From positions 2,046,001 to 2,110,000 of the forward strand of contig CDRNST010000215.1 in NCBI GenBank assembly GCA_977016875.1: 64,000 nt of DNA, in the 5' to 3' direction. How positions within the stretch are numbered: the stretch's first letter is position 1; each line of letters begins with the position of its first letter. A program made the position numbers and the translations under genes. Positions 25,801 to 36,867 of this stretch are shown here, one piece after another. The DNA is from Pavona decussata (Eukaryota). The notes below the pieces were generated by a model that was not told the origin of the DNA, made no database searches, and was given only the letters and a program-made list of their open reading frames with translations.

Positions 25801-26934
25801 AGATAATGCATTAGTCAATTCCAACAGGAATGGGGGGAGGGGGGAGGCACCCACCTTTAAATTGTAATGAAAGCTTAAGCCTGGTTCACACTAAAGACAT
25901 AACAACATAAGTGTGAATTTGCGCAAATGCAAATAGAAATTTATGTCAATGTTTTAGAGCAACATAACATAATGATGTAGCAGAAATATATAATGACATA
26001 AGCATAACAACATAAAGAAAAAACTGATCTTTTCTTGTTGTTATGTCCATGTCGTTTCGTTATTATGTTGCCAGTGTGCACCAGGCTTTATTCATGCCAA
26101 ACTAAGTATCAGATGAGTCCTATTTCTCAGTAAATGAGGCAGTGACCACTGGTTTTGTGAATATTGATGTCCTTCTCAGACATGCTTAATCAAGAAATTA
26201 TTTATTGCCTTTGCTGATGAGCTTATCATTTTAATGAAGCAACAATATTGCAAGGTGAAAATCTCACAACGGTCAAATGCCCGGAGGTCAGGACTAATGC
26301 CTGACTCCCATGACAGACAATGTTGAAAAATGACCCACTAATGCCCCCAGGGGGACACTCCTGGAACTGACTGGTAACTTTTGTGTTCTGAACGGTACAA
26401 CAGTGTTGATGTTCATCCGAAACATGTTTTAGAAATTTACGCGTCTTATTTCTACTTCAAGGAAAACATTCAGTTCTATTGTTAACCTTAACCTATGCAT
26501 AAACTTATTATGCTGAAGCTTTTGTTACTAATTTTATAGACTCTGGGTAATAAACTTTTTCGCCTGACAAGCTAATGCTGTGAGCGTGCACGTGTCTTGT
26601 TTTTACTTTCAGGAAAACCTACAGTTCTGTTGTTAACTTTAACCTACGCATAAACTTAATTATTTTGCTAAAGCTTTTATAAATTTTATAGACTCTGAGT
26701 AAAAAACTTGTTCGCCTGACGAGCCTGTAAGCTAGCGCGCAGCAGTAAGCGTGTGTTTGTTTTCATACCGACCTGACCATCTAAGATCCTGTTAATAGTC
26801 CGCGTAGGACTTCCAGTGATAACCAAATCCTTGGCCACATTCTTAGGATCGACATTAGGACACACTGCCAATACACTATTGATCATTGACTGGGGAATAG
26901 TTTTATAAGGGGAACAAACCTCCATGGTCGCCAT
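13802..26934 (-). CDS. EME1: Crossover junction endonuclease subunit EME1 (MUS81 partner), 12 coding exons, about 741 aa
   Basis: Exons (all GT-AG, frame-consistent): 26773-26934, 24674-25531, 23749-23877, 22621-22668, 21410-21589, 21172-21264, 19959-20089, 18356-18625, 17906-17966, 17022-17147, 14450-14506, 13802-13912. Domain order: acidic/Ser-rich disordered region, Lys/Glu coiled coil, inactive ERCC4-like domain (VVSIDP...SITWQR...GLEKYFR...SRVEVEEALVDLQL...FTKAVAEAPFK), then HhH region (GLKKVWQQYFQQFRNVSADMAAAIVAVYPSPQSLLQAY...LLQDILVRRGAGVLASSRRIGPELSRRV). Confidence 0.93.
14600..16881 (-). mobile_element. Truncated Polinton/Maverick (adintovirus-like) remnant inside EME1 intron 10: terminus, small Cys/His ORF and decayed rve integrase
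   Basis: Integrase N-terminus: YTLHKPARRHYKRSRVIVPGINAQFQADL...YKYLLTCVDVFSKYAFVV (14979-15401), then TDQG and IKMKP. Integrase C-terminus: VYRLKDDGDEILDGTFHE (14604-14786). ORF 16137-16496 contains CDGCAIHHPSQRQHSC. The minus strand starts AGTAGT at 16881, matching the Polinton terminal motif. Confidence 0.8.
17666..17845 (+). mobile_element. Degenerate tRNA-derived SINE in an EME1 intron
   Basis: GGAGCAGGGATGGCG A-box-like head, ctcccacca..tggcc, decayed B-box and body ending ...ccaacgttctaaattgcaatttcatctgg. Recognised as a common cnidarian SINE pattern from memory. Confidence 0.55.
20535..20755. repeat. Foldback-like element made of inverted arrays of short AATCAATGAGT-like repeats
   Basis: aatcaatgagt / aatcaatag repeats at 20538-20640 are mirrored by gattactcattgat / ttacccattgat repeats at 20670-20750. 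Confidence 0.55.
21716..22412. repeat. Tandem ~110-bp repeat (about 6 copies) in an EME1 intron; a dispersed single copy lies at ~46085-46190
   Basis: gtgtgaccattcaaatgaaagctactgagcagtactttcctgtggtgc...gagtctgtggatgaaatcctaaa recurs at ~21718, 21906, 22017, 22128, 22233 and 22344. Confidence 0.9.
23270..23674. mobile_element. piggyBac-like MITE (TTAA-CCC...GGG-TTAA) with a second MITE nested at ~23430-23624
   Basis: Outer element runs ttaacccctaatatcaaagaac...agggcttaaagggttaa; relatives occur at 42010-42210 (reverse) and 59477-59655. The inner element has TIRs TGTGCAGTTCCAGAAAA / TTTTCTGAAACTGCACA. Confidence 0.7.
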
Positions 26935-26965
26935 GTTGGTTGTTGGATCCAGCGCTTTTTGGCGG
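26929..26965 (-). promoter_or_regulatory. Candidate YY1-like (AACATGGCG, overlapping the start codon) and E2F-like (TTTGGCGG) motifs at the EME1 start
   Basis: Motifs are seen directly in a locally GC/CpG-rich patch. Function is inferred only. Confidence 0.3.
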
Positions 26966-28269
26966 AGCGCGCGTCGAAGGCGCGCACGCGGAGCACCACG
27001 GGTAGGGAAATATGGTAACTCATCGATGCGAGAAATTTTGTTATGCGCCCGTACGCAGCATCAGAGGATTACCAATGCGAATGGTAAACTTGCCTGCAAC
27101 TGCCAACTGTTTTTAAGGAATAAAAACAAACGGAAATTTTCAAGAAAGCTAATTTATATATTCATTGAATATGTTGACTAACGTGGAAAGAAGAGAAAGA
27201 GAGGAAAAGAGAAAGAAAACGAGAAAACTGGCGACGATTAAGCAAAGTTCGACGTGAAAGAAAGCGACTGAGAGCAAATGCAAACAGGCGAAATATGAAT
27301 GACGACTAACAGGTGAAACAGCAAGACAGAGCACGAGAAGAGAGAAGGAATTATACTTAAGAGCAGCGGAAGAAAGAACGAAAAAGAGACTAAATTATGC
27401 GGTAACCATAAGCAGGCTTATATAAATGCTATTAAAAAAAGGAATTGTGGAGCTCCGTTTTACGCTTGGCCAGATAGATAGATAGTTTAGATAGATAGTT
27501 TTATTGATATAATACTTGGCAGCCCGAAAGCTGAATTACGTATTTACATAGATACAAAACTAGCATTTATTTGCACTGCTGGCTCGTGCTAAAAAACTTT
27601 CATTAGACACAGGACAACCAGGCTAAAAAATGACGAGTTTGTATTAAACTCGGCAGAAGAGAAAGTTTGCGGGAACAGCAGTTACATGTATATTGTGTTT
27701 GTGCTAGAAATCAGTTTCCAAACTCGTGTTGACCTTAATCCAAATTACATCTGGAGTATAATCGATCATGAATGTCCCACGCTCTAAGCGCTCCGAGCGA
27801 TCTTTCAAGACGATGTCAGGAAATTCCTCATAAGAGGTTTTTGGAATTACTGGGATACAAAATGGCTGTTAAATGATCGTGCGTCAGCGAAAGTTTCCAG
27901 AAATGTCTTCCCAAATTTGCTTAAAAAGATAAATCTTGCAGCTACCCCGCTTATTCTTATTCCAGAATACGGTCAATCGAACGCAACCTAATTTTTTTTT
28001 TTTTACATGTATCTACATGTAAAAATGTTTTATTGCCAATAAAATTGTGTTTATTAAACTTTCTACTACAGAAATGGAAGGAAACCATCTTGGTACTCTG
28101 GGGTAACATTAAAGTATTTAAAGTAATATGTTCTCGTTTGGTGCCCCTAATTATTCCTGATTGTTCCAAGAAAAATTTGTTCCAATTATTCTGATCAGCG
28201 ATAATTAATGCGATCTAACAACTTGCAGTTCCTAAGTGGCTGTGAATCCTGTGACGAATGATAGATGTC

Positions 28270-30191
28270 ACCATTCAACCAATAGGGCTCGCCAAATTTT
28301 TCCAGCCAGCCAATCAGACGAAAGAGTGAGCTTCATTCTGCGAGCCGGCAAGAAAACTTGCAAAATTCGCGCCCCTTTTTGTTCAACTTTTTTTACCTTG
28401 TTCTGAAGCGACCGTCGAATGAAGTTTTATTTTCTTCTCCGAGTTTTGAGCTAATTATTTCGTTCTGCAACGAGAACTTCACCGAGAACCATATATACAG
28501 AGTGCACTAAAGAAGGAGAAGACGGAAAGTAAACTTTGGAGACTTTGTTGGCATGGCAAGGTAAGAAATTATCGACAAGCAGTTTGCACTTTCAATGCAA
28601 ATGCTGACGTTTGTTAAGTTTCATTGTGTTTTTTAAAGCTAGTACTTGTCTAAAGTTTGCTTTTATTTAATTTTTCTCAGCGTTTCATATGACCAGGAGG
28701 AAAGCTCCAACCTCCAAGGCTACGATTAAAGCGTTAAAAGTTACAAAAACGACGCAAAATGTTCTGTGAAGCCGGAAGACACCTTTACGCGTGGAAACTC
28801 GGCGGGGGAGAATTCGTGGCAAACTGAGAGTCTGACTCTGACAACAACTGTTAACATAAAAAACTAAGGTGAGGAAACTAGCACTCTCGATTTAATTTAA
28901 TTAAATAAGAGTGGCAATAATTAAACAAGTTTATTTTCCCTCTTTAATCATTTTTTTCCTAAAACGGGAAAAGTTTGTGCTTTTAGTCAAGGCATATGCA
29001 TGCAGCGCGAAAGCTTTCGATCAGTTTTGGAATTTGCGGGGAAAACAAACTGTTTACATCACGAAAAATAACGTTAACTATATAGTTAAAATACTCCCTG
29101 TAACACTATGTAGTTTGCCATTTTTGAAGCGAAATTATGTTATTTTGTCAGAACGTTTTTGACTTTGAGCAAAATTAGCGTATGTAGCAAGTTTCCATTC
29201 AATATTTAGTACAAACATGTTTTCTTGGAATTCCGCGGAATTTTTATTTCTTCTGCTCGAGTCGCAGAAACGCTTTAGGGGTTCTTTTACACATAAAACT
29301 AATGTCAAATTTTACGACCATGAATCTCCTTTAAAATTCAATTGTTCTTGCTTTTGCTAAACTTATGTCAATGTTAAACATCGTCATGGTTGCACGTTGA
29401 AAGGCCAGATTTCCGCACAACCCCATACATTTTAAAATTATGTATCCACTTTGCGACTCAAACTCTATTCGCGCTTGCCGTTTTTGCACGAGAGTTACTA
29501 TGGCAGTCGTGTATGTGTAATTTATGTATTGGACAGTGCGGAAATCTTTCCTTCCTTTTGATCTAAAATTTCAATTTCTTTGATCTTTTGTAAATGAAAG
29601 TGTCTTCAGTTGGACTGATTTCTGGCTGTTAAGTTCTGTAATTTCTAGGCTCACTACTTCAGTTAAAGGATTTGGAGACTATCTGAGGAAGACCATTACA
29701 ATTAAGTACGCAACTTGAACAGTTGCAAAACCAGAGTTTGAAAAAATACATTCTTGGAAGGGATTCAAACCTGTTCGAGGAACTCGAGCAGTGAATTTTT
29801 CTGTTCATGCTTTCTTTTCTCAACTGTGATAGCCTTACATAAAAATTATTCACCGACTGTTAAAACATATGATATTTCATATGTTCATTTGAATACATTT
29901 ACACTTCTGTCAAGCAATTTTTTTTTACCGGAGCCTTAACGCGCTTCATCATTCTCAAAAATTTATACAAACAGTTATGTATCTAAACTCCTCTTTTGTT
30001 TTGTTTTCTAGAAAATAACTGATTCCTCTTGACATGCCATTGTCCCTGCCATGAACAACTTTTACCACTTCTACAACCTGGTACAACTTCTCTATGGACA
30101 CAAATAAACTGTCTGATGTATCATGAATGGAAACTTCAAGCTCAAGCGGCAAGACAAAGACAAAGTCCGTCGAAGACCTTTTATGGTCTTG
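28270..30191 (+). ncRNA. Candidate spliced transcript (lncRNA or micro-ORF) oriented divergently from EME1
   Basis: Two CCAAT boxes (~28279, ~28310). Donor AAG|GTAAGA at 28560/28561, acceptor tttttctcag ending 28680, donor AAG|GTGAGG at 28868/28869, acceptor ttgttttctag ending 30011. The spliced ORF from 28553 is only 18 aa. Confidence 0.35.
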
Positions 30192-31749
30192 GTATCGTAC
30201 CCTTTCAGATTTATTTTTTACTGGGGTAGGGTTAGTTAAGGGGGGTAATTAAGTTAGCTCTGAATGGAACCCAGCTCTCGTTTGCGACGTTTAAAATATT
30301 TTTTGTCGACTATTTAATTTCTTCAGCTACTGTTCGACAAATGGTCCTGCTCTTCGACTTTATAACTTTTTGAACCGTCCGCATGATTCGTAATTGGATT
30401 TTGTTTCGCTTTTTGAGTGATACTGGCATTTGAAAATTGGCATATTTTTGTTCCTTAGCATTTCGACTGATTGACTTTCAGATATTCACTTTTTTCGCTT
30501 TTCATGAGATTGGTAATTCGGTTTGAATGGCTTTTTAATCGAGTTTCCATTGTTTTCGTGCTCCGTCCGTTATCAGCTTTGCTGCTGTTTGACCGTCAGC
30601 GTGTTTTTCGACTTCTGCAAGTGTCAGTGGCCTCAGCTAAGTAGCAGAATTATCTCTGCAACTGAGGCAAGCCAGCCTGGGTCCATTCAGATTGCATATG
30701 CTTAAACGCTGTTCACTGGGCTCTTCAAGCCAATTGGTAACCTGCCTAACTGGTTTGAATGCCAAGTGTTGGGAAGTAATTGGGCTTAATTGAGTATGCT
30801 TAATTGAAGGTATGTTTCACGAGGTACCTCGTGAGATATGCCTTAAATTTCTGGTAAGTGTTTTTTTTTTTTTTTCACTCTTCAGCGTTTAAGCATCATT
30901 CCCCATAACAGCATGAGGTCGAAATCACTTCGAGATTCATGCACCACTGCCAACGACTGCAATACGCAGCCGGGTTATGGCTCGTCATGAGGTCGAATTT
31001 ACTTCGACATTCATGCATCGCTGCCAACGACTTCGATGCGCAGTTTATGGCTCGTCGAATTTTTTTTCCGTGAAGTCCATTTCGATTCGCTTTTTATCTT
31101 GTGAATAACCAGTTTTATCACGGAAATTCCGTTTCGTTCTGGTGCTGTAGGTGTTTCCTCTCTTATAGCTGATTATTCGTGTCGGCTTCATCCTTTTTTT
31201 GCGACATTTTCTTCTGTGATCGACATTTTCAATTCGCTCTTTTTCTTCTGAAGGTCTAACTTTGCCACGGCATTTCGATCCGTTACGGTAGGCTCGTAGT
31301 TTTCTGCCCTTTCTTGTAACTGATCATTCCTGTCCACTTTTGTCTTATGATACATTTTTATTGCGACTTTTTTCCACAAATGGATTTTCGATTCGCTTTT
31401 TCTCTTTCCGTAGGCTCATGGCTTTCCTGTTACGATAGGCTTATAGCTTTTTCTCCACTACTGTTTTGCTAAACAATTTAACCACTTAAGGGCGATTCGC
31501 TTTTTCTCTTGTGAAGACGCAGCTTTCATAGCACCGATAATGAATTTCGATCTTAAACTGTAGGCTCATAGCTTTCCTGTTACGATAGGCTGATAGCTTT
31601 CTCTCCACTTGTGTCTTGTGTATTAATAGTGTAGCAGAGGTTCCTTATTAAGGTTGCTCAGTCATATCTTTTTCCTGGGGTGGGTAGTTGGCTTACTTTG
31701 GGATTGGGTAGGGTGGGTAGAACAGCAATAAATCCAAACGGTAGATTAG

Positions 31750-33543
31750 ACGCGGGAGTTCATGTGATGCTAGACGTCACATGGGCTGGTCGCGTACATA
31801 ACTGTTAAACTGTTAACATACGTTATTACTTTAAGGAAAACTTTTTTTACGAACATTTTCTATATATATATTTTTTTTTTCGTGTGAGAGTTCTTGGGAT
31901 GACTAGCATCCCGTAAGCTGGTCGTGCGTATTTAATTAGTCAGATCTGCTGGACACTGAAAACTGAAGATCACAAGACTTAGGAGCAAGAAAGGACGTCA
32001 AACAGAAAACACACCGTAGTGCGTTTACAAGCTCGGAGAACTGAAGAGAGTATTCTGAAGAAGAAAACAAAGAACGGAGAGGACAATGGAAAAGAAGAAC
32101 AAGAACAAGAAGAATTGGGACGAGGAAGGAGTGAAAGAGACTGTTGACTTTTTGAGCTTAGTTCACCAAGCTATTTTTCTTTTTGCTCTTTTCACCTAGT
32201 TATGAAGGGCTCAAGGAGTTTTCTGTTATCTTTGTTACTGGTACGCTTTCGTGTAGCTCGATATCTTCTGTAATTCTACTTGATATACAAACGAAAAGAA
32301 ACGGAGTCGACGAAGCAAGAACGAACAGAAGATGAAGATAGAAAGCATGAAAAGAAACCGCAACGAAAAAGTCAAGACCTTAGACAAAACAGCAAATAAA
32401 TTCAAGAAGAATGATGTCAACATCACAAAAGTAAGACAGCAAATTGTTGAGAATTGAAGAACAGAGAGATGAGTGGAGGACACGAGGCTCTAGGTGCGGT
32501 GAAAATTATATTGGCGTTGAACTACGTTTACCTAGGAAGGACTTAGGTTCGACTCCTGACAAGAGCACTCGGGTTTCCTTTTTCCGAGTATGCCTGTGTC
32601 ACTCACTGAATACCTCATCATTCTCATTTAACTAGTTGTTATCATAAGTAGAGCAGTGGCTCAAGAATTTTTTTTTTTCTTCCTTTCTTTCTTTCTTCTT
32701 TTGTGGAGGCTGACAAAATGATGCATCGTTGCTTTTGCGTCAAATTTCTCTACCACCCTTTTCTCTTTTGACAACTTTTGACAACCTCCTTAATTCGGGT
32801 TCTCGCCTTTTTTCCGTCTGGGGACCACTTTAGGAGGCCGACATCACCGAAATCCAGGGCGAAGTGAAACGAAGAAGCAAGACTAAGAGAATCGCGCGCT
32901 GAAAGGCATCAGAGACACGAAGAAAAAGGGTCAAGAATAGTAGAAACGCGGACGACCATTAAAAGACATGTTTGAAGATAATTGAGAGCAAGAGTGTCAC
33001 ATGAAGCCAAAAAGTTTGTCCTGGACTTTTAAGAAAGTCAGTTTCCTTGTTAATATTTTGAAACAGTGGTGCGGGGGCTCACAGAATACTTCTTATTCCA
33101 TGGGCTGGTCGCGCACTGTCTTGTCTTTTATTGATTGTTTAATGTAGGTATTTAGGCTCGAAAACTGGATCAGAAACCAAGATCAAGAAGTATCAGCAAG
33201 AACGTGACATTGGAAGCTGTGCGCAGATGGCCAAAAATACGTTTCATCTGGACAAGCCTGCAAACTGGAAAAGAGTAAAACACTGGCAGTGAAGACCTGT
33301 TAAGAGAGCAAGAAAGGATACAACAAAGCAAGAAATGCTGACAGAAAGAAACAGAGGACTTAAGCAATATTTGTTATACTCTACAATAATCAACATAATT
33401 TTAAGTCAAGTAAGACGGGTGGAGCGGGGATTCATGGGATTTCACTGATCAGTCCCATGGGTCGGTCGCGCGTCCAGGTAAAAATTAAACAGAGTGGTGC
33501 GGGGGTTCATGGTTTGGTTTCCCATGGACTGGTCGCGTATTCT
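31750..33543 (+). other. Five dispersed copies of a conserved, covarying stem-loop (GCG-GG-stem-loop-stem-GGT-CGC)
   Basis: Hairpins at 31750-31795, 31881-31928, 33063-33119, 33424-33469 and 33491-33543, with compensatory changes and G-U pairs on the plus strand. Confidence 0.7.
32535..32632 (+). mobile_element. 5'-truncated tRNA-derived SINE
   Basis: B-box GGTTCGACTCC followed by gagcactcggg...ttccgagtatgcctgtgtcactcactgaa. No cloverleaf can be formed. Confidence 0.6.
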
Positions 33544-35259
33544 TTTAGTAAGTAGTTATTTACGAAATGAAGAGCAATAGTTTATAAAGACCGCTTTGAA
33601 CGGGAGTTGTAACACAAAATCACAAGGAAAGACGCAAAGGCCTTCGAAAGTCTTGTGAAGATGTGAAGAAATACTCCAGAACAAAAGAAGACCAGCAAAC
33701 ATGTTAACTGACCTGTGAAAGAAACAAGCAAAGACAGACGCGGACTGCTGCATCGAATGTACTCGTAAACACTTCAGGTCACACTTGCTGTGGTCTCTTC
33801 TGCATCTGTGAGGTGGTTCTGGTGCCAGTCTACAGTAAACCTTTTCACTTCAGCTTTCTCTTAATTTTAGAGCTCACCTCTACATCGTACACACCTTGAG
33901 CCCTTTCACGTTTTTTTTTTTTTTTTGTTCACCTTTAAGGGTTTTCTTTTGACAGCATTCAGCCTTCCTCTTCTCCAGTTCTTCCCGTCTCTATTTTGTG
34001 TTCTATTTCTTTATGTTTTTGTCTTCCCATTTCACCCCTTTCTTCCACTTTGTATACGTCTCATTATCGGCACCCTTGAAGCCTTGAAGCCTCCTCCGAT
34101 TCACATGCTTCATTACTCTGCACATTGGTCTATCTACGGTTTCATTGACTTTCGTTTTCTCTTTTAACTAAATACGTTTTCTTTGCCGCTCGTCTACTGT
34201 CATATTCTTTGGGTAAGAGTTTCATCTTTATAATGCTGTGGCCTTGGCAACCTGGATTATAAGGTCAACCTTTCTATGCCCCTTTAAACTTCTCTCCCCA
34301 GTCCAAACACTGACTTGTCTCAGATTGTTAATTGTTACTAACGCTCCAGTTTACCTTTTTTTAAGTTGTGTAGCATTTCACTGCTTTCCGGAAAATGATC
34401 TTTACCTATACGCAAATTTTCCTGATACTGTTACCTGTTACTATTTCCTTACGAGCCCTTCCTTAATTGATGTTCCTTCTTTTCAGTTTTATGACTACTA
34501 CACCGCTATTCTAACTCAGCACAGGGTCAGAAAGTGTCAGTTGTTGTGATTTCTGTAACGTGAATGTTTTATGAGGTGGAATAGTTAGCATCATGACCAA
34601 GCCTGGAAAGCCAGGTGCTGTTGTTTGTCAGGTCTCTCAGTTGAGAGCTGTTCGCCTTACTTAAATCTTCGATGAATGAATGCCAGGAACGACTGTGCTT
34701 GTCTTTAATTCTTTCTGTTTTTCACTGTTATAAGCTTGAGTGACAGGCCTATTCCTGTGCAAACTCTACCTCACAATCATTACGCTGAGTTAATCTTATG
34801 CCCTGGTTAGTGACTGAGTCTATTACAGCCTTGGTAGGAAACCAAACGCTTTCAGAGCCCTAGCAAAGGGTAACTGGTCCACGTTTCACTGAGATCTTTT
34901 TCAGTTTGAAACTATGGTTTCTTGGTTGACTACCTGATCTGTTTGGTTTGAGCTGAGTGCTTGTACTTTCTCAAGCTTTCTTCAATACTCCTGACTGTAC
35001 ATTTCAGCCTACTACAACTTTTTTTTCATTTTATAGCTACTGAAAACTAAAAATAATAATCATCACAATCATCATCATTATCATCGTCATCATTATCATT
35101 AGTATCACCATCATCATCATCATCACCTTCTAATGACTATTTTGTTACAGGTAACTAGTGCTACAGCTTGCAAGAAACGGGATGATCAGTTCCAAGTTCG
35201 GAGATGTCTAATACAAAGCCAGTGAAGCCTTTTCTGAAACCTACAGTAGGTGGAGCTCA

Positions 35260-36055
35260 CTGCCGTCACACTTGCAATTAATCTACTTTTCAGCCAAGAT
35301 GACCAGCAATCAACAATGCTTCATCTCGGTCTTCAAACAGAATACCCTGTCGATATTGAGGAATCCGCAGATTTCAGACGCCTCAACCACATATTTCGAG
35401 AGTTAATTCAGCAACTATTCCATTTCGTTACTCTAATAACGGTTTATATCATTCAAATATTCAGCCGCAGTCATCGTCATCTTTAATTCATTCGCTGGCC
35501 ATTGCTTTTTCTACACGCCCGCGTATTTCGTGATCATCTCATATACACCTGCAATCAGTATCAATAACTCGACTTGTGCAATCATTATTGCTACCTGTAG
35601 GCGCCAGCTTCGAGTGTATAATCTGGTCAGCACTCAGGTTTAGTAATTCATCTACACCTCAAGTTCAGTCAAACGCCTGCTTCGCGATTTACGTGCGTGC
35701 AAACTATGTGAGTAAATTTTCTTTTGTTTTGGCACCAACATGGTGGCAATGCAAATCAATCTATTGGTACCAAATCCGCATAGACCCGCATGCATTCTGC
35801 TTTTATGCATTTGTCGTCGTTTTGCAAGCAACTTCCTTCCTTCTATCGTTTGTACAGTTCGATCCACTTACCACATCTGTGGTCTCATGTTCACTCTTCG
35901 CGCAAGGCAACATATCGTGCAAGAAATAGAATTTTTCGTGTATTCTTCCTATCACTTACCGGATTCATCGTTTCCATCTTTGCAATTCAATTCTCGGTGC
36001 CTATTCGTTCAAAACTTCGGCGTTCATCGTTTCGTACGCATCGGTCATCTACCTG

Positions 36056-36137
<82 letters not shown>

Positions 36138-36740
36138 GTCGTCATTATCTGTAAACAGCTTCGTTCTCCGTCACATTTTCATTACTCCTTCAATTTGGGT
36201 AAGTTATGCACACTACTGGGAGCCTAACGTTATCGTTATACAGGCGGTTGCGTCTTTTTTTCCCCACGGTTTTCCAATACGACCTGTAATTCACCATTTT
36301 ATTCCCCAATTCATTTCGGTTTCCGTCTTATCTACGCCGACCCATATTCGTTATCTTTCGCCAACTAACTGGCTATCTACTATCTACACGCGTTGCCTTC
36401 CGCAATCGATATTAGTATCGTAAAACTGTATATAAATGCGCTCCGTGTTTCTTCAAAATATTGCGGTCCATCGCCCTCTGTTATCTTTTTCGATACCTTA
36501 TCATGCCCTACAGAAATACATGCTTATCGACTTGCTATGCAAGCCATCGACAAACCGTGCGCAACTGTCGTTATCATCTTTTGCGATCTTGATATACCGC
36601 CATTGTCTTCTCGCCGCATTCGCTCTTCTTATCGCGCGACCCATTTTGGTGCCTTGTCGTTGTAGTGTAGCTAATACAATTTTTCCAGCACACGGAGCAC
36701 CAAGTAGAAGTCACGTGATGGATGTTCTGACCATGCGGCA
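35260..36740 (-). mobile_element. Highly decayed 5' part of a LINE (CR1/L2-like): ORF1 and the start of the AP endonuclease
   Basis: The minus strand starts with a CACGTG...GCTCCGTG leader. Cys/His relics resembling a PHD finger occur near 36450-36570, and NICG-L-RRLKSADF-like endonuclease N-terminal relics near 35330-35400. Many frameshifts. Confidence 0.45.
36056..36136. repeat. (CAT)n microsatellite
   Basis: Perfect trinucleotide run. It produces the poly-Ser and poly-Ile ORF artefacts. Confidence 0.97.
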
Positions 36741-36798
36741 AGTTAGCACTCTCAGAAATGCTCCAGTTCAAAAGGTCTCGCTGAAATACTTGAAGTGT

Positions 36799-36867
36799 TG
36801 GATGGATGGATGGATGGATGGATGGATGGATGGATGGATGGATGGATGGATGGATGGATGGATGGAT
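36799..36867. repeat. (TGGA)n microsatellite
   Basis: Perfect tetranucleotide run. Confidence 0.97.

Follow-up and report, generated by a model that had tools for sequence, protein, structure and literature searches.

What are the five hairpins that stand on the plus strand between positions 31,746 and 33,543 of a 64,000-nucleotide (nt) stretch of DNA from the coral Pavona decussata (assembly GCA_977016875.1, contig CDRNST010000215.1, positions 2,046,001 to 2,110,000 of the forward strand; hereafter the window)? A first-pass annotation of the window had described them as an array of one unannotated motif under selection as a plus-strand structure, with four intact copies and a decayed one in which AG takes the place of GG. 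All five hairpins, H1 to H5, lie where that annotation placed them, and as plus-strand RNA they fold far more strongly than as minus-strand RNA or as DNA. We directly observed their structure, strand, conservation and copy number and the absence of a matching family. The sequence comparisons indicate that the five are copies of a single stem-loop module of about 55 nt that is selected as plus-strand RNA. As to what the module does, we tentatively favour (probability about 0.45) a structured non-coding RNA, encoded in multiple copies, on which the stem-loops recur as docking sites for a protein.

A stem-loop module with an all-G internal loop

The complete module comprises 22 pairs, one bulged base and an internal loop of G opposite GG. 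Its outer 4-base-pair (bp) stem emerges in H2 to H5 once six flanking bases are added, and the hairpin coordinates that we give include this stem (Table 1). Three elements are constant: a short G-C lower helix in which (U/C)GCGG pairs with UCGC(G), the asymmetric internal loop made up entirely of G, and the upper helix over its first seven pairs (RRUUCAUG with CAUGGRYY), among which two U.G wobbles are fixed. The apical helix varies freely by covariation, and the apical loop is specific to the hairpin type (UUAGA in H1; ACUUG or ACUAG in H2) and constant across paralogues and in a second coral. Loops and spacers had been taken to be unrelated between copies. This is correct when loops of different hairpin types are compared; within a type the loop is conserved, as are the spacers between hairpins among paralogues.

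As plus-strand RNA, the hairpins of the window fold with z scores from −1.9 to −5.1; the minus-strand RNA folds are far weaker (H1 −15.7, H2 −8.8 and H5 −10.3 kcal/mol). The H2-type hairpin of a second paralogue family (family B), folded as plus-strand RNA, reaches −22 kcal/mol with z between −2.4 and −3.0; the copy in the other coral reaches −31 kcal/mol (z −5.6). For the H2-type hairpin, minus-strand RNA gives a z score of about 0, and plus-strand DNA gives −6.7 kcal/mol with a z score of −0.14. The comparison of RNA with DNA folding energies favours structure at the RNA level, without proving it. A strict two-arm pattern matched three times in the window, where none was expected, and 28 times in the 602-Mb genome, as against no match for a backwards control.

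Pairing is retained through compensatory swaps, as the first-pass annotation had claimed. Across 39 distinct copies (alignment A1), 92.4% of cells pair, compared with 32–47% when the partners are slid, and double changes occur at 9 of the 22 pairs; across the 61 distinct copies from all loci, 90.8% of cells pair (33–42% when slid), with both-sided changes again at 9 of 22 pairs. Because much of the covariation signal is inherited among paralogues, events were counted between hairpin types and lineages instead. Between types, G-C becomes A-U at the second upper-stem pair (H4), two apical pairs change in H1 and H3 (G-C to U-A and G-C to A-U), and several events fall in the outer stem. H1, which is kept in families A and B and in the other coral, preserves its pairing through double changes from U-A to G-C in the other coral and from G-C to A-U at a C143 locus. 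The bias towards G-U pairs on the plus strand that had been noticed at first sight is likewise borne out: the hairpin alignment holds 194 G.T cells against 16 A.C cells, so that wobbles that can be read on the plus strand only make up 23% of pairs; at three positions the wobble is nearly invariant. Within family A, to which the window belongs, identity is 0.84–0.94 in the hairpins and 0.75–0.87 in the flanks. Selection on the plus strand, most likely at the RNA level, is the reading of the motif that stands.

Rfam 15 was searched with the interval 29–36 kb of the window, with seven related loci and with short inputs of 206, 246 and 931 nt under lax filters; no family overlaps the hairpins, and the best unrelated matches have expectation (E) values of 0.2–10. 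Models of small nucleolar RNAs, box C/D or H/ACA, have no match on the hairpins, and their weak matches at 34993–35120 fall in an (ATC)n microsatellite. The pattern matched once in 596 Gb of bacterial and archaeal genomes, in a metagenome-assembled genome of the Gemmatimonadales; the hairpin is not formed there, and we therefore rejected the match as due to chance. A full-text literature search with the arm sequences returned nothing for 13–14-mers and only unrelated primers for 11-mers.

Genomic copies and an upstream structured domain

Other genomic copies, which the first-pass annotation had proposed to seek with a covariance model, are present: model R1 yields 65 matches in the genome, all of them within 12 regions (about 20 units). 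Family A carries the order H1, decayed H2, H3, H4, H5 and comprises the window, a C215 locus at 1.34 Mb, three C214 loci, two C70 loci and a tandem array of 6.3-kb units at 180–220 kb of C215. Family B carries H1 and H2 only, 110–125 nt apart, and comprises a 3.6-kb tandem array on C318, two C143 loci and one C2 locus. Two overlapping coral-metagenome contigs, L041 and L042, hold H1 and an intact H2 spaced by 145 nt; their best match in the P. decussata genome reaches 66–69%, and they therefore come from another coral. H2 is also intact in family B, and one family A paralogue has a (GAA)n run in its stead. H4 and H5 lie about 300 nt apart in the paralogues, the window copy having a deletion of about 235 nt of spacer.

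The 5′ flank AGUGGUGCGGG is common to H3–H5 and to the H2 of family B, which points to H3–H5 as later copies of the H2 type. From these comparisons we conclude that the ancestral module is the pair H1 and H2 at a spacing of 110–145 nt, to which H3–H5 were added in family A, where the original H2 is decaying. Two conserved islands lie upstream of the hairpins, and only island 1, island 2 with its extension, H1 and H2 still align among family A, family B and the other coral. A purine-rich tail after H2 is also found in family B and in the other coral. In the ancestral layout, as judged from the aligned loci, a structured domain (about 0.9 kb) is followed by a linker that varies from about 0.7 to 1 kb, then by H1 and H2 and the purine-rich tail.

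The upstream domain was folded with RNAalifold over the region 30,120–31,120 in an alignment of nine sequences drawn from both families and the other coral. The consensus energy was −235 kcal/mol on the plus strand and −188 kcal/mol on the minus strand, compared with −11 to −17 kcal/mol for column shuffles. The plus-strand fold has 15 helices (131 bp) that pass our filters, with 18 double-change pairs and 136 G.U cells against 25 A.C cells. Two of these helices are long-range and one of the two covaries: the helix that closes the domain at 30699–30895 reads UUAAAC/GUUUAA in family A and the other coral and UUGAAC/GUUCAA in family B, and 97% of its cells pair. The hairpin at 30806–30845 has double changes at four pairs and, in family B, an apical insertion of about 50 nt. 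In island 2, family B has U.G where family A has U-A and C-G pairs, which leaves the pairing intact on the plus strand only. The conserved upstream helices indicate that a larger structured module is conserved, of which the hairpin array is the downstream part; we found no larger structure joining H1 and H2.

Several smaller features accompany these elements. Clusters of GATTGG (CCAAT on the opposite strand), often as TCGACNGATTGGCT repeats, lie between the arms of the helix that joins islands 1 and 2 (L041 2190–2290; C318 and C143 loci). In family B, forward CCAATC boxes adjoin island 2 and a CCAAT box stands between its hairpin and UCCAUUCAG. Judging by their sequence, the GATTGG/CCAATC clusters could be NF-Y-type promoter boxes or an RNA motif. 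Directly 5′ of H1, at 31675–31725, are tracts of three to four G residues (GGGGTGGGTAG...GGGATTGGGTAGGGTGGGTAG), and a comparable G-run precedes H1 in the other coral (L041 3805–3830); the run may be a G-quadruplex candidate. At the C2 locus, two reading-frame fragments encoding DUF3504 (E 2e-11 and 4e-11; L046 6448–7407) lie about 1.4 kb from a lone hairpin, DUF3504 being the domain type of Crypton-derived proteins; the same stretch has one weak QRICH1 match, and nearby is a 325-residue P-loop reading frame without a Pfam match. Adjoining a C143 unit is a near-perfect inverted repeat of 512 nt (93%; L040 6894–7405) with sub-threshold mir-9 model matches on both strands (E 2e-4), which most likely reflect a generic hairpin.

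Table 1. Positions in the window of the hairpins, the upstream domain and the surrounding unit; energies are for plus-strand RNA and scores for the covariance model.
Feature	Position	Strand	Description
H1 hairpin	31746-31800	+	ACGCGG/UCGCGU stem below the G / GG internal loop and a 13-bp stem with tandem U.G pairs above it; apical CUAGA; 65.2 bits; −26.7 kcal/mol, z −5.1
H2 hairpin, decayed in family A	31878-31932	+	GUGAG replaces GCGGG and GGUCGUG replaces GGUCGCG; 46.8 bits, lowest of the five; −17.0 kcal/mol
H3 hairpin, H2-type	33065-33119	+	Outer stem CAGUG/CACUG; 65.6 bits; −23.6 kcal/mol
H4 hairpin	33418-33476	+	GA/UC instead of AG/CU at the base of the upper stem; 61 bits; −22.9 kcal/mol
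H5 hairpin	33493-33543	+	57.8 bits; −19.7 kcal/mol
Island 1	30150-30271	+	Hairpin GAAGACC-UUUUAU-GGUCUUC (30171-30191); block containing TTAATTAA; CUGAAUGGA, 5′ arm of a long-range helix
Island 2	30628-30693, extending to about 30,800	+	18-bp hairpin 30628-30674; UCCAUUCAG (30681-30691) pairs with 30259-30270
Closed domain	30699-30895	+	12-bp long-range helix 30699-30710 / 30884-30895, enclosing hairpins 30725-30758 and 30806-30845
Hairpin, 17-19 bp	30806-30845	+	5′ arm has the 5′ splice-site-like AAG|GUAUGU (GUGCGU in family B)
Two short UCGAA-type hairpins	30918-30934, 30986-31015	+	
Purine-rich spacer tracts	31940-33760	+	Bear hairpins; 60-75% A+G in 100-nt bins; pyrimidine-rich DNA on either side
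Family A unit, about 19 kb	28095-47323	+	Contains the hairpins and upstream domain; about 8 dispersed loci and one tandem array; 65-82% identity between copies

Candidate roles of the hairpin array

The favoured reading, that of protein-docking stem-loops, draws on where conservation falls. It is the internal loop and the adjacent helix that are constant, and not one arm, which is the pattern expected of a protein-recognition site rather than of a small-RNA precursor. We infer transcription, protein binding and a host function from the sequence. The units would be transcribed on the plus strand, an RNA-binding protein would read the G-rich internal loop and the U.G helix of the hairpins as repeated docking sites, and the purine-only spacers, which cannot pair with one another, would leave every stem-loop separate and exposed. 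The low copy number and the differing ends of the copies give the unit the look of a duplicated non-coding gene rather than of an active transposon. A broader proposal, which is possible but on balance doubtful, is that the array forms the 3′ part of an undescribed kilobase-scale structured non-coding RNA of stony corals. Such an RNA would have at its 5′ end a domain of multiple helices, covarying long-range ones among them, and would carry an array of docking stem-loops, open to expansion, on purine-rich spacers; it would be encoded by a small multi-copy host gene family conserved between coral genera.

Repeated stem-loop modules occur in long non-coding RNAs such as Xist, with its A-repeat, and Drosophila roX1 and roX2, with their roX-box stem-loops, where their presumed role is protein recruitment. 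The coral unit resembles these RNAs in carrying several copies of a short conserved stem-loop on one strand of a non-coding unit, with unrelated spacers. Unlike them, it is multi-copy and has a structured upstream domain of 0.9 kb and purine-rich rather than U-rich spacers; nor does it share sequence or model similarity with them, the sole rox2 match being on the minus strand in AT-rich spacer (E 3.1). A second parallel is the array of iron-responsive elements in the 3′ untranslated region of the transferrin-receptor messenger RNA, in which five protein-binding stem-loops with a fixed CAGUGN apical loop and a C bulge occur in one coding RNA. The coral array likewise has five copies of one stem-loop in which a bulge or internal loop is conserved, on what would be one RNA and with putative protein binding, but its loops differ between hairpin types and it has no coding gene.

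What is new here is the ancestral pair of H1 and H2, the structured upstream domain and the recurrence of this domain and of the hairpins in contigs of another coral, with compensatory changes. To our knowledge, few animal long non-coding RNAs have a secondary structure that survives comparative tests. The motif and the domain of about 0.9 kb have strand-specific wobbles and compensatory changes, and they are conserved from one coral genus to another although the DNA around them no longer aligns. Should they be transcribed, cnidarian biology would gain a new structured RNA whose partner could be sought with a 55-nt bait, along with a natural example of stem-loop duplication adding binding sites to an RNA scaffold. 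If the unit is instead a mobile or satellite repeat, the hairpins would be its cis signals and of lower interest.

Several observations weigh against the docking reading. The number of double-change pairs in the hairpins is not above that in shuffles (302/500), the relatedness of the paralogues inflates covariation counts, and the cross-species comparison consists of one other coral species. The helix between islands 1 and 2 (30,259–30,270 with 30,681–30,691) never varies and so could equally be a DNA-level inverted repeat. Furthermore, C143b and C2 carry split direct repeats of island 1 and H2, and tandem arrays exist, both of which fit an origin as a repeat or mobile element too.

Under such an origin, the unit would be an old non-autonomous retroelement or satellite-like repeat of low copy number, the hairpins would act in cis in its RNA as packaging or reverse-transcriptase-recognition signals, and the purine tail would be its 3′ tail or polypurine tract. 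We consider this unlikely, although the first-pass annotation had offered a retroelement packaging array as one explanation. Packaging signals of retroviruses and long terminal repeat (LTR) retrotransposons are stem-loops with exposed G residues that are bound by nucleocapsid zinc knuckles, and the coral hairpins share with them the unpaired G residues, a splice-donor-like site in an upstream hairpin and polypurine tracts, which lie 5′ of island 1 and 3′ of H2. The 3.6-kb and 6.3-kb tandem arrays and the split direct repeats are in keeping with this origin, as is the fact that several dispersed 19-kb copies start within about 100 nt of each other. However, no unit contains a reverse-transcriptase, gag, recombinase or transposase frame, or any conserved frame, and LTRs, a primer-binding site and gag/pol are absent. 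We saw no LTR-like TG..CA ends or target duplications, and the direct repeats of island 1 span only 165–330 nt with unlike flanks and are not LTR-like. The copies are low in number, confined to 12 regions, and take the form of 19-kb segmental duplicates or tandem units of 3.6–6.3 kb. Their 3′ ends differ: the window copy ends about 200 nt before the C214 copies, and the DNA downstream of the three C214 copies has nothing in common. Neither the covariance model nor the 3.6-kb family B unit used as a query found an autonomous or any further relative, and viral contigs gave no pattern match.

The other explanation first offered, a cluster of small-RNA precursors, is improbable on anatomical grounds. 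MicroRNA-like, mirtron-like or short-hairpin RNAs cut from a host transcript would suit hairpins of about 55 nt and 22 bp with the outer stem, which is the size of a microRNA precursor, and would suit their clustering on one strand. The H2-type copies (H2 to H5) also start with GUG(G/C), followed by AG or GURAG-like sites in most copies. A small-RNA precursor, however, would conserve one arm and need a basal stem, and in canonical animal microRNA precursors the stem is 33–35 bp including a basal part of about 11 bp. Here the stem measures 18–22 bp, no such basal stem lies beneath the 22 bp, and the flanks are unpaired purine-rich or AT-rich spacer. Conservation peaks at the internal loop and adjoining helices, around which both arms are equally constant, and not at one arm or seed; the 5′ ends, the expected place of a seed, vary with hairpin type. 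H1 does not begin with GU, the GUGGUG-type donors are weak and lost in some copies, and no microRNA model matches any of the five hairpins, the weak generic matches (E 0.23–7.7) falling on the spacer at 32095–32190 and the hairpin at 30806–30845. A role in splicing control is distinctly improbable as well. Each hairpin of the H2 type would form a short exon or the end of one, its fold hiding or presenting nearby splice sites of a spliced non-coding gene. AG stands 3–5 nt upstream of H2, H3 and H5, GURAG-like sites follow H2, H3, H4 and H5 by 7–35 nt in most copies, and AAG|GUAUGU sits inside the stem of an upstream hairpin; the unit also has a promoter-like start with CCAAT boxes and two exon-like pieces bounded by consensus sites. 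Yet AG and GU are each lost in one or two of 11 paralogues, the covarying outer stem also accounts for the AG, and H1 does not fit. We regard as very improbable that the hairpins form in single-stranded DNA for a recombinase or rolling-circle transposase of the Crypton or Helitron type. Folded single-stranded DNA also shows strand-biased mismatches, GATTGG/CCAATC motifs adjoin the hairpins, and the C2 locus neighbours DUF3504 fragments; but the share of G.T among the pairs and the H2-type hairpin, which as DNA folds no better than shuffles, speak against it, no recombinase lies in or beside the other 11 of the 12 regions, and the copies have no defined ends.

The surrounding unit

The family A unit has no long reading frame, and no open stretch of at least 30 codons is convincingly kept across paralogues. 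Masked N stretches lie within it at about 37.9–38.5 kb and 40.77–40.95 kb. At its start, two CCAAT boxes (28,279 and 28,310) are conserved among paralogues, and downstream of them are two exon-like pieces with consensus splice sites: an ATG at 28,553 (ATG-GCA-AG|GTAAGA), a donor at 28,561, an acceptor at 28,680 and a second donor at 28,869. When these pieces are joined, the frame stops after 18 codons. Their arrangement suggests that 28,279–28,869 may hold the promoter and first exons of a plus-strand spliced non-coding gene running into the hairpin region.

The C215 copy at 1.34 Mb runs on into a duplicate of the neighbouring EME1 region that is about 80% identical (C215:1356197–1361828 against window 19900–28500), from which we conclude that the segmental duplication to which this copy belongs is inverted and larger than the unit; the extension counts against a transposon. 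Genes for SGNH hydrolases that follow the window copy show no linkage to the other loci.

Within the 19-kb unit, a 70-nt tandem repeat of 35 copies (85% matches) occupies window positions 43073–45520. The paralogues have it too, often at several places; its plus strand is poor in C, and neither strand folds better than shuffled sequence. Between H2 and H3 of the window copy, at 32535–32630, lies an inserted short interspersed repeat of high copy number, with dozens of matches at 88–92% across contigs; its GGTTCGACTCC box is tRNA-like. An inverted-repeat element at 29400–29553 (arms 29401–29430 and 29524–29553) has many copies of about 80% identity on other contigs and, from its sequence, looks like a miniature inverted-repeat transposable element inserted in the unit.

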